Positions 5,005-64,000 of a DNA stretch of 64,000 nt are shown piece after piece; within the stretch, counting starts at the first letter, position 1; every line of letters starts with the position of its first letter. The notes under the pieces are model-generated. The model ran no database searches and was not told the DNA's origin. It saw only the letters and a program-made list of their open reading frames with translations. A program made the translations under genes and the position numbers. The DNA comes from Piromyces finnis finn (lineage: Eukaryota > Fungi > Neocallimastigomycota), in contig MCFH01000029.1 of assembly GCA_002104945.1 (NCBI GenBank), positions 62,001 to 126,000 of the forward strand, given 5' to 3'.

Positions 5005-5061
5005 ATATATTTATGTATAAAATGTACAATACTTTTTTTTTATGTTTTAAAACAAATGAAA

Positions 5062-5092
<31 letters not shown>

Positions 5093-5410
5093 AAATAAAA
5101 AGTATAAGTTTTATGATCTTTGTTTATATTTTATTTTGTATAATACTTAAAATCAATAACAATATTAATAATAAAAAGGTAAAAAAAAAAAAAAAAATGT
5201 TTTAGCGCTATATTAATTTTTTTTTTTTATAATTAGAAAATATTATATACAATATAAGCTTATAAATACCAGATTTATTTTAATATAAAATAATAAAAGA
5301 AAATAAAGGATTCTTAAAAAAAAAAAAAACTTTTTTTTTTTTTAAAAATCATTTGTATTTTTTCAATGTTTAATATAATATTAGAAATAAATCCATAATA
5401 ATGTATAATA

Positions 5411-5447
<37 letters not shown>

Positions 5448-5455
<8 letters not shown>

Positions 5456-5986
5456 ACCACGAGTGATTTAATACTTGGTCGATTGTTGGCCTTTTACTAC
5501 TATCTCTATTAGTCATCCAAATAATTAATTCTTTGCATTCTATATATAAATTATTTAATTTATGATAAGAAAGAAAAATAAAGAATTTATTATAATACTT
5601 AATTATTTAAATATTAAAAAAAAAAGTATATATATATAATAAATAATAGTATAATTTTTATAAAATTTCTAATTAATATTTTATTTTATTTTTTTATTAC
5701 CGTTAGAGATTGACTGTGGGAATGTCATTTTTTTTCTAATAATTTCATAATAGTCATTGAACGGGATAGCTTTGTAAATCATAGTATATAAAAGAATACC
5801 TAATGACCATATGTCTTGTGGAGGACCTTCATAAGTCATACCTTTGACAACTAATAATTTTATAATAATATTAAAAAAAAAAATTACTATATTTTTTATT
5901 CCTTATATAGTATATTGAATTAATAGTATAGAATGCTCATATATATATACTTTCTGGAGCCTAAAATAAATATATTACATATAATA

Positions 5987-6025
<39 letters not shown>

Positions 6026-7280
6026 CAAATTTAAATTTAAATCATTATTTATAAAGTAAAAATTTAAATTAAAAAAGTTTTTTTATTAACAAACTTACAG
6101 CAAATAAAAAACTTCCCACAAAATTACTTAATTTTTGATCTTTTTTATAAAAAGTACTTGAACCAAAATCAATTAATTGAATTTCTTTAGTTTGATAATT
6201 AATGAGAACATTTTCATCCTTTTTTTTTTAAGTTATAAAAGTTAAAAAAAAAAAATAATATTTTATAGTGTTAGAATTGATATTAAATTAATATATAATA
6301 TTAATCTATAAAGTATTAATATGGTATATTCTTATTAATATTTAGTCTATCTAACTCTCATTACTTTTATATCACGATGAACAATATGATTATGATGTAA
6401 AGTTTGGATAGCTTCTACTATATTTTTAAAAATTATTTTAGCTTCTTTTTCCGACATCATTTTATCCGTAGTTTTATCGATATAATCAAAAAGATCAGAA
6501 TTAAAATCTTCTGTGTCAGCAAATACTAAATAATAGTAAATAGAATCTTCCCAGTAAGCGATAAGCTTTGTTAAATTATTTGGAACATCTCCGTTAAATT
6601 TATCATAAAGATTTTGTAATACAGCTATTTCATTTGGAAATTTTTTGTAGGCATTATCATTACTGTAGGTCCAACATCCTCTTAATATTAATGATTTTAC
6701 AACATACTTTATAATCACTTTTTTTTGGGTTTGATTATGAATAGCATTTCTAACAAATCCACTGGAACCTTTTCCTAATTGTTTAGTAATTGTAAAATCG
6801 TTGATATCTTTTGATGTTCGAAGATTTTCGTAAATTCCCTTTTCTTTATAAAAATCACTATTTTTCATTTCCTTTTCAAATTCCTTAAAAGATATTGATC
6901 GACAATCTAAATTGGCACTTTTCAACATTAAAAGTAAATCTTTTTGATTTTTGTAGTTATGATCATTTTCGAAGAAGAGTAAAAGGATATTATCTTCTTT
7001 TTGTGAATCTAAATAATGCTTTGAATAGGATAAAATGTCGCTTGAGAAATGATTTACCCCAGAATGGGTAGTATAAGTAATACTAATAGAATTGGTAAAA
7101 TAGTTATCGTCTAATGATTTACTCTTGTCAAAGATTTTTTCGATTTCATGATTTTCACACTTAAATAAACTTTTATGATATATTTTTAATAAATTATAGG
7201 AGATAAACCACCATAATAAGAATATTTTCTTTTCCTTATCCGTATTACCATCTTTAATAAATAAAAGTTATACATATATT

Positions 7281-62303: not shown

Positions 62304-63199
62304 TAATGGTCATAAGATTAATTAAATTAACCACATTAAAACATCATGATGGTTTATATGATATTTTCCCTTTTATTATCTTTATAAAAATGTTTAAAAA
62401 TACATAACACTTAATAAGGTTTTTAATTGTTATAACTATTTTGAATAAACAATGTCTATTTTTTATATATGGGTTAATAAACTTTGATTTATATGTTCAT
62501 TAAAACATTACTTAATAAATAGTTTAATAAACTCAAGTTAATATGAATTAAAAATTAGATAAAGAATTAAAACACTTTTTTATTTAAACAACAATATCAA
62601 TTTAAAATATATGATGCATTAAAAAAATAAAAAACATATATCAGTATTTTAATAATTAAAATGAATCTTTTATTATTATATCTTTAATACTATAAAATAA
62701 AAATTAATACTACATGACCTTGGCTCATAGATCAAAAAAAAATTTTTTTTTTTTTTTTTTGATTTTTTAAAATTGTATAATATCATTTTGTCATATTGGT
62801 ATTCTTTTTTTTTTTTTTTTTTTTTTGTGATATTAAAGTAATCTATTCTATTACATTATAATTAGCAATATGTAATATTACTTGGATTAATTAATCAAAA
62901 TATCCTTTTATATATATTTATATATATATATATTTTTTTTTTTAATTGAATAACCAAAAAAATTAAAGTTTAATAAAAGCAATCTAACATATTATAATGA
63001 ATTCATAAATAAATTATCCTTTGATGACCATATTTAAATTAATTAAAAAATTTTTTTAATTATTTTTCTCTTTTAATTATTTTATTAATAATAATGATGA
63101 TAATAATTATAGGATTGGACATACAGTTACTATAAAATATTACCAAAAAGAAAAAGGGGAATGCTAATTAAATTGAGTTAGAATAAGAATATTGTTTTA

Positions 63200-64000
63200 T
63201 GATGTGGTATATATTGGAATGAATATTAACATACTGAGATCTTGCAACTGATTTTACTGTCTTTGCTATTTTGGATAATGCATTAGTGGCATTAGTAGTT
63301 GTAACAGCTGTAGTAGAAGAAGAAAAAGCAGCTGCTTTAGTTGTAGCTTCAGCATCAACAGATGTATCAAGGGTTACTGAAATTTCAGGAGTTGCTGTAT
63401 TGGAAACCTCAATAGTTTTTTTGCCAATTACGAGAGAGATATTAAAATAAATTTATAGTAATAAAAAATTTTAAACCTTAAAAAGAGCTGTCTATAATAA
63501 TTTAATAATAAAAAGTATTAAAATGAAACTATAAATACAAACTAGAAAAAAATAAAGTAATTAAAAAGATTGTTTATAAAAAAAAATACCTTTCCTTTTC
63601 CATAAAAGGCAAATGCATAGCATGAAAAAAAATTCTTTTGAATCTTTCCAATTTTTTAACAGCTTTTTTTTTTGAAGAAGAATAATTTTTAATAGTAAAG
63701 TTGTACCGTCATTATAACCTAAATATGCTAAATATACTAATGTTTTCATATATGATAATATAATAGCCATGCAGATAAAATAATGATATACAGGTTATGC
63801 AGGTTATACAGGTTATACAGGTTATGGTATATGATTTGATACATAAAATATCTTAGAATTATTATATACCTCTACTGAGGCCAAGAAACCCTGGAGTGGG
63901 ATTGAATTCATGCTATTCGTTAATGTAGATTCTGTGTTTTTATTTTTCCATGAATTTCTAGGTGAGGTACTAAATAGATTACACAATTCATGGTTATTTA
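63200..64000 (-). pseudogene. GEM1: Decayed Miro/GEM1 (mitochondrial Rho GTPase) copy: EF-associated region and start of second GTPase domain; truncated by the window edge
   Basis: 64000-63870 gives ELCNLFSTSPRNSW...TNSMNSIPLQGFLA. 63770-63590 gives YMKTLVYLAYLGY...TTLLLKI, then a frameshift into GKIQKNFFSCYAFAFYGKGK, then after an intron TALFK. These match recalled Miro motifs (LFSTSP..PW; TLQGWLAQW; TTLAYLAYLGY; RNVFLCYVFG..GSGKTALL). The expected QW reads T-CAG-TAG, and two expected AG acceptors are not evident. Confidence 0.72.
63787..63826. repeat. 9-bp tandem repeat (ACAGGTTAT)x4 in an intron of the Miro remnant
   Basis: atacaggttatgcaggttatacaggttatacaggttatgg, read directly. Confidence 0.85.

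Follow-up and report, generated by a model that had tools for sequence, protein, structure and literature searches.

We show that one end of the window (the whole 64,000-nucleotide stretch of Piromyces finnis DNA under analysis, C155:62001-126000) holds exons and introns that derive from a Miro gene and follow its order, on the minus strand from position 63134 to 64000 and then for about 810 bases beyond the window end. The window end cuts this remnant, whose full extent reaches window-equivalent position ~64810 (C155:126810) in the flank read beyond the window (C155:124001-132000, here L014, where the window coordinate equals L014 + 62000). On its contig the remnant spans C155:125134-126810 and is interior to 668 kb of contiguous sequence; C177 and C200 denote other contigs of the same assembly, which was searched as 56.46 Mb in 232 contigs, and local G+C is about 16%. 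The recognizable relics follow the order of Miro, with an EF_assoc_2 domain beyond the window followed by EF-hand 2, EF_assoc_1 and the P-loop of GTPase-2. Relative to a complete gene on C177, homology starts inside intron 7, its 5' end lying between window-equivalent ~64785 and 64815, covers exons 8-12, introns included, and the opening codons of exon 13, leaves out ~1.1 kb of parental sequence, picks up again in the last exon past the membrane anchor and stops about 100 bases beyond the parent stop codon.

Six-frame searches of the genome with the Pfam EF_assoc_1 and EF_assoc_2 profiles identified exactly three Miro-type loci, on C177 (~390.8-391.8 kb), on C200 (~286.7-287.5 kb) and on C155, the last being the weakest, with EF_assoc_2 only (42.8 bits) and a TGA inside the match. 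In the remnant itself, EF_assoc_2 lies just past the window end, split by the TGA, and scores 25.2 bits, above the cut-off of 23.7, while the in-window pieces reach 13.8 bits (profile positions 1-25) and 17.5 bits (positions 29-58) against EF_assoc_1, both below the cut-off of 29.1. A PDB search with C155 pieces of 64 and 77 amino acids gave no meaningful match, and the in-window pieces taken alone look only weakly Miro-like. The identification as Miro is made because the DNA matches C177 at 79-81% and because an above-cut-off EF_assoc_2 domain lies just past the window end. When the remnant DNA was searched against the genome, C177 was matched at 78-81% identity, and blastn with introns included aligned the two loci in collinear blocks, the first covering L014 1472-2809 and L015 5020-3707 (78.8% over 1393 columns) and the second L014 1134-1432 and L015 6408-6127 (80.5% over 303 columns), with E = 0 over ~1.4 kb, gaps included.

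The alignment to C177 allowed us to follow the remnant part by part along the minus strand, in window or window-equivalent coordinates; the identities of the parts come from two block-wise alignments, with gaps excluded. Beyond the window end, exon 8 has had its acceptor changed from AG to GG (64766-5) and its donor from GT to AT (64643-2), and it contains an in-frame insertion of 12 nt at 64717, while exon 9 has acquired a nonsense codon (AGA to TGA, 64439-7) together with insertions of one T at 64371 and two nucleotides at 64355. The remnant of exon 11, covering EF-hand 2 and the start of EF_assoc_1, occupies 63870-64000 and continues to window-equivalent 64016; it is 87% identical to its C177 counterpart, and its EF-hand 2 loop has lost Asp at position 1 and Gly at position 6. 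An extra C at 63880 and a TGG-to-TAG change at 63874-63872 account for the damaged Gln-Trp pair that the first-pass annotation had reported near 63875. Intron 11 (63772-63869) keeps its donor GT (63869-63868) and has lost its acceptor, and a short tandem repeat of ~29 nt is inserted in it, with a 9-nt unit of the cctgtataa type, located at 63790-63830 on the same strand and missing from the parent intron.

Exon 12, which encodes the end of EF_assoc_1, the linker and the GTPase-2 P-loop, persists at 63590-63771 with 85% identity to C177 exon 12. Its acceptor has changed from AG to TG (63773-63772), in agreement with the earlier remark that no AG precedes 63770, and the frameshift formerly placed near an A-run at about 63665 resolves into an insertion of 5 nt at 63676 and a loss of one nucleotide at 63658, in and beside the run. 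In the P-loop, G-S-C-G-S-G-K of the parent is replaced by AFYGKGK (63610-63590), so that the first Gly has indeed become Ala, as had been noticed; the loop is that of GTPase-2, not of GTPase-1. Intron 12 (63492-63589) retains donor GT and acceptor AG and is 92% identical to the parental intron. The alignment assigns 63462-63491 to an exon 13 stub holding the first residues after the P-loop, and here an additional T in a T-run (~63479) yields TALFKV followed by a stop (63491-63471), which is the disruption after TALFK described before. Between 63433 and 63461 lies an AT-rich filler at the deletion junction, delimited by the blastn blocks, the alignment ends and hydropathy. The Thr/Ser/Ala-rich open stretch, which the first-pass annotation had placed where GTPase-2 was expected, is present at 63234-63432 and is 87% identical to the post-anchor tail at the 3' end of C177 exon 17; GTPase-2 itself has been deleted. 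At 63236-63234, codon comparison shows that the parental stop TAG has become CAG, so that the frame remains open on to 63171, and the duplication ends with a copy of the parental 3' flank (63134-63233), which shows 89% identity to the 99 bases that follow the C177 stop.

Each lesion listed in the first-pass annotation is thus present as a genuine departure from the intact C177 paralogue. Altogether, the copy has two nonsense codons, three destroyed splice sites and frameshifting indels in exons 9, 11, 12 and 13, and exon-by-exon comparison with C177 found no continuous open frame across consensus splice sites. A frame of 94 codons in the tail, open from 63452 to 63171, is low-complexity, matches no Pfam family above cut-off and has no supportable start context. 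Judged from its sequence, the C155 copy cannot encode a Miro protein.

The losses at C155 extend to entire domains. Since homology starts in intron 7, the copy is without GTPase-1, and exons 1-7 have no copy at C155 or elsewhere in the assembly other than on C177 and C200. The internal deletion of ~1.1 kb (L015 ~5028-6118) takes out what follows the stub of exon 13, the whole of exons 14-16 and the beginning of exon 17. In the parent this segment encodes GTPase-2 and the membrane anchor almost in full, and of GTPase-2 only the P-loop relic AFYGKGK and five further residues are left at C155. The parental hydrophobic segment (L015 6070-6126) falls almost wholly within the deleted stretch; hydropathy analysis found no hydrophobic segment in the C155 tail frame that could stand for the anchor, its maximum Kyte-Doolittle value being 0.53 versus 1.49 in the parent. 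Genome-wide searches with the parental 5' region and the 1.1-kb segment returned only the sequences themselves, the old paralogue on C200 and low-complexity intron matches, and thus no second recent copy of the missing 5' or internal segments exists in the assembly.

In contrast to the shortened, deleted and disabled copy on C155, the parent gene on C177 is complete, with splice sites and frame intact. We mapped 17 exons at C177:389345-393309 (L015 2345-6309), in which every intron is bordered by AG and GT, the phases are continuous from ATG to TAG and no exon contains a stop. In Pfam searches its exons exceed the cut-offs for EF_assoc_2, with 77.4 bits, and for EF_assoc_1, with 44.9 and 30.4 bits; the first GTPase gives a weak Ras match, and one exon matches the Miro structures 4C0J, 5KSZ and 9E2P in a PDB search. 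The C200 gene (C200:285225-288680) has 15 exons that provide a counterpart to all 17 exons of C177, in the same order and with unbroken frames, and AG and GT fall exactly on the borders projected from C177. For both models, intactness was judged exon by exon and by phase arithmetic, and exons of both genes match PDB entries named Mitochondrial Rho GTPase 1 (5KSZ, 9E2P, 4C0J) with E values from 1e-19 to 3e-5; the lowest of these values, 1e-19, is also that of the fused exon 8/9 of C200 against human MIRO1. C200 lacks introns 8/9 (L016 3775/3776) and 15/16 (L016 5326/5327), both of which C177 has, its exons being contiguous there and in one frame; all other intron positions and phases are common to the two genes. 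The two proteins are ~58% identical (identities summed over exons), which indicates that the genes are old paralogues. They also differ at their C-termini, the C177 protein having ~60 Thr/Ser/Ala-rich residues after its hydrophobic anchor (L015:6127-6306, C177:393127-393306) and the C200 protein ending 9 residues after the anchor. Tail-anchored Miro proteins do not usually extend so far beyond the anchor, and an unrecognized intron in the C177 model could be the alternative explanation.

Divergence between the copy and its parent is even across coding and non-coding sequence. With gaps excluded, identity to C177 is 87.5% in exons and 87.8% in introns, introns 8-12 taken individually aligning at 78-92%. 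Nei-Gojobori estimates over the codons that align without gaps (~167 synonymous sites) give dS 0.131, dN 0.135 and dN/dS 1.04, and with C200 as outgroup 28 derived amino-acid changes fall to C155 versus 4 to C177. Almost all of the protein change is thus placed on the C155 branch, as would be expected of a dead copy beside a constrained parent. Together, the equal divergence of exons and introns, the dN/dS of 1.04 and the 28-to-4 split indicate that the C155 copy evolved neutrally.

These findings make it very probable that the C155 locus is an unprocessed, that is DNA-duplicated and intron-retaining, pseudogene fragment of the C177 Miro/Gem1 paralogue (C177:389345-393309). Retention of the introns places the duplication at the DNA level and excludes a retrocopy; we had considered a processed pseudogene and rejected it since the copy keeps its introns and its 3' flank is the genomic flank of the parent, with no poly(A) tail. 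Moreover, the copy keeps the exon 8/9 intron, which is present in C177 and absent from C200, and it therefore descends from the C177 lineage. As homology shows, the segment copied to C155 began within intron 7 and reached ~100 bases beyond the stop codon. The copy either never had exons 1-7 and any promoter or has lost them since, and the ~1.1 kb with GTPase-2 and the membrane anchor disappeared later. Neutral drift has introduced the nonsense, frameshift and splice-site mutations seen today, with the intact genes on C177 and C200 presumably covering Miro function in this fungus. We infer that the copy has no function.

Compared with Miro/Gem1 proteins (human RHOT1/2, yeast Gem1p), the fragment shares recognizable relics in Miro order but lacks GTPase-1, almost all of GTPase-2, the membrane anchor and a continuous frame. 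With its parent it shares, where the bases align, ~87.5% identity from exon 8 to exon 13, introns included, and again over the last part of exon 17 together with ~100 bases of 3' flank, and the intron positions are the same. Like other unprocessed pseudogenes of eukaryotes it is intron-retaining, partial, disabled and neutral, and nothing notable sets it apart from them; as an ordinary member of this class, it matters little in itself. The dead duplicate that the first-pass annotation had offered as one of its two readings, together with its view of Miro-like segments in the correct order, is thus borne out by the minus-strand alignment to the intact C177 paralogue, with the further detail that the duplicate is truncated, internally deleted and neutrally evolving. 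Annotation should label this locus a pseudogene, lest its EF-hand relics be called as a gene.

Two features lie close to the 5' end of the remnant. Just beyond the window end, at L014:2847-2939 (window-equivalent 64847-64939), we observed a dispersed element of ~95 bp that is relatively rich in G+C; at least 40 copies of it, with identities of 72-91%, are scattered over many contigs. This element, which may be MITE- or SINE-like, comes to within about 40-60 bases of the 5' breakpoint and may mark an insertion or recombination event that truncated the copy; neither it nor the remnant contains a tRNA detectable by ARAGORN or a match to Rfam. Farther out, L014:3381-4551 (minus strand, window-equivalent 65381-66551) is occupied by two open frames next to each other, of 204 and 202 amino acids, which lie upstream of the remnant on its own strand. 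The second of them has ankyrin repeats (Pfam Ank_2, 29 bits, and Ank_4, 30.9 bits), and the pair is probably a neighbouring gene that ends ~570 bases from the remnant.

The proximity of these same-strand ankyrin-repeat frames, together with the open 94-codon frame in the tail, raises the question of whether the remnant has been put to new use as a non-coding RNA related to its parent, as the 3' UTR of the upstream gene or as a short tail-frame peptide. We consider this unlikely in the extreme, given that exons are no better conserved than introns, that dN/dS shows no sign of constraint, that Rfam returned no match and that the open frame is low-complexity and belongs to no Pfam family above cut-off. 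A related idea is that the remnant is transcribed, for instance by read-through from the ankyrin gene, and that the resulting RNA, ~87% identical to parental exons 8-12, influences the expression of Miro from C177; the sequence data give no support for it, and we regard it as barely credible.

We also weighed whether sequencing or assembly errors could have produced the lesions in a Miro gene that is in fact intact, the third of the genome. A- or T-runs, where long-read assemblies err, do contain several small indels (64371, 63658 and ~63479), and each of these homopolymer indels, taken singly, could be such an error. However, most of the damage is not of this type, comprising two nonsense codons and three splice sites altered by substitution, the +5 nt insertion, the 1.1-kb deletion and the absence of exons 1-7, to which are added substitutions at ~12% of sites, distributed evenly across exons and introns alike. 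The missing parts are found nowhere else in the assembly, and the locus is well inside its contig. It is not reasonable to ascribe the substitutions, the splice-site changes, the 5-nt insertion, the deletion or the truncation to errors of assembly, and there is scarcely any prospect that C155 holds a third intact gene.

The other reading in the first-pass annotation, a snapshot of Miro loss during organelle reduction in which C155 would be the decaying last or principal copy, could appeal to the heavy degradation of the locus and to a 2014 review according to which species with mitosomes and hydrogenosomes have no Miro, Microsporidia and Entamoeba being named (PMC4100572), but it is almost certainly wrong, for the same genome contains two intact Miro genes that score well above the EF_assoc_1 and EF_assoc_2 cut-offs and match solved Miro structures, anaerobic fungi are reported to retain ERMES, a target of Gem1 regulation in yeast (PMC10648710), and a survey of fungal GTPases counts two 'Miro/Rac' genes in Piromyces sp. 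UH3-1 and four in a Neocallimastix (PMC8146680 Table S1). An intact copy elsewhere had been named beforehand as the observation that would refute that reading, and such copies exist on both C177 and C200. From the survey counts, the retention of Miro in anaerobic fungi is already on record, in line with the two intact genes described here; these genes fit the published retention of ERMES and qualify the older review statement that eukaryotes with hydrogenosomes lack Miro. The main use of the C155 pseudogene is therefore negative: because two intact Miro genes are kept in the same genome, it should not be cited as evidence that Miro is being lost as mitochondria are reduced to hydrogenosomes.

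The proposal that the DNA comes from a hydrogenosome-bearing anaerobic fungus, made at first pass from the letters, agrees with the gene content of the genome. We found a large subunit of [FeFe]-hydrogenase in an open frame of 631 amino acids (327.8 bits) and at least 150 scored matches to the fungal dockerin CBM_10 among 561 candidates. Hydrogenase and dockerins are hallmarks of Neocallimastigomycota, and their presence here supports the assignment to a hydrogenosome-bearing fungus. Additionally, we observed a second locus resembling [FeFe]-hydrogenase on the minus strand of another contig (C207:190713-191901), where Fe_hyd_lg_C is matched in two pieces with TGA and TAA codons inside the matches; these stop codons may belong to introns or may mark another pseudogene.
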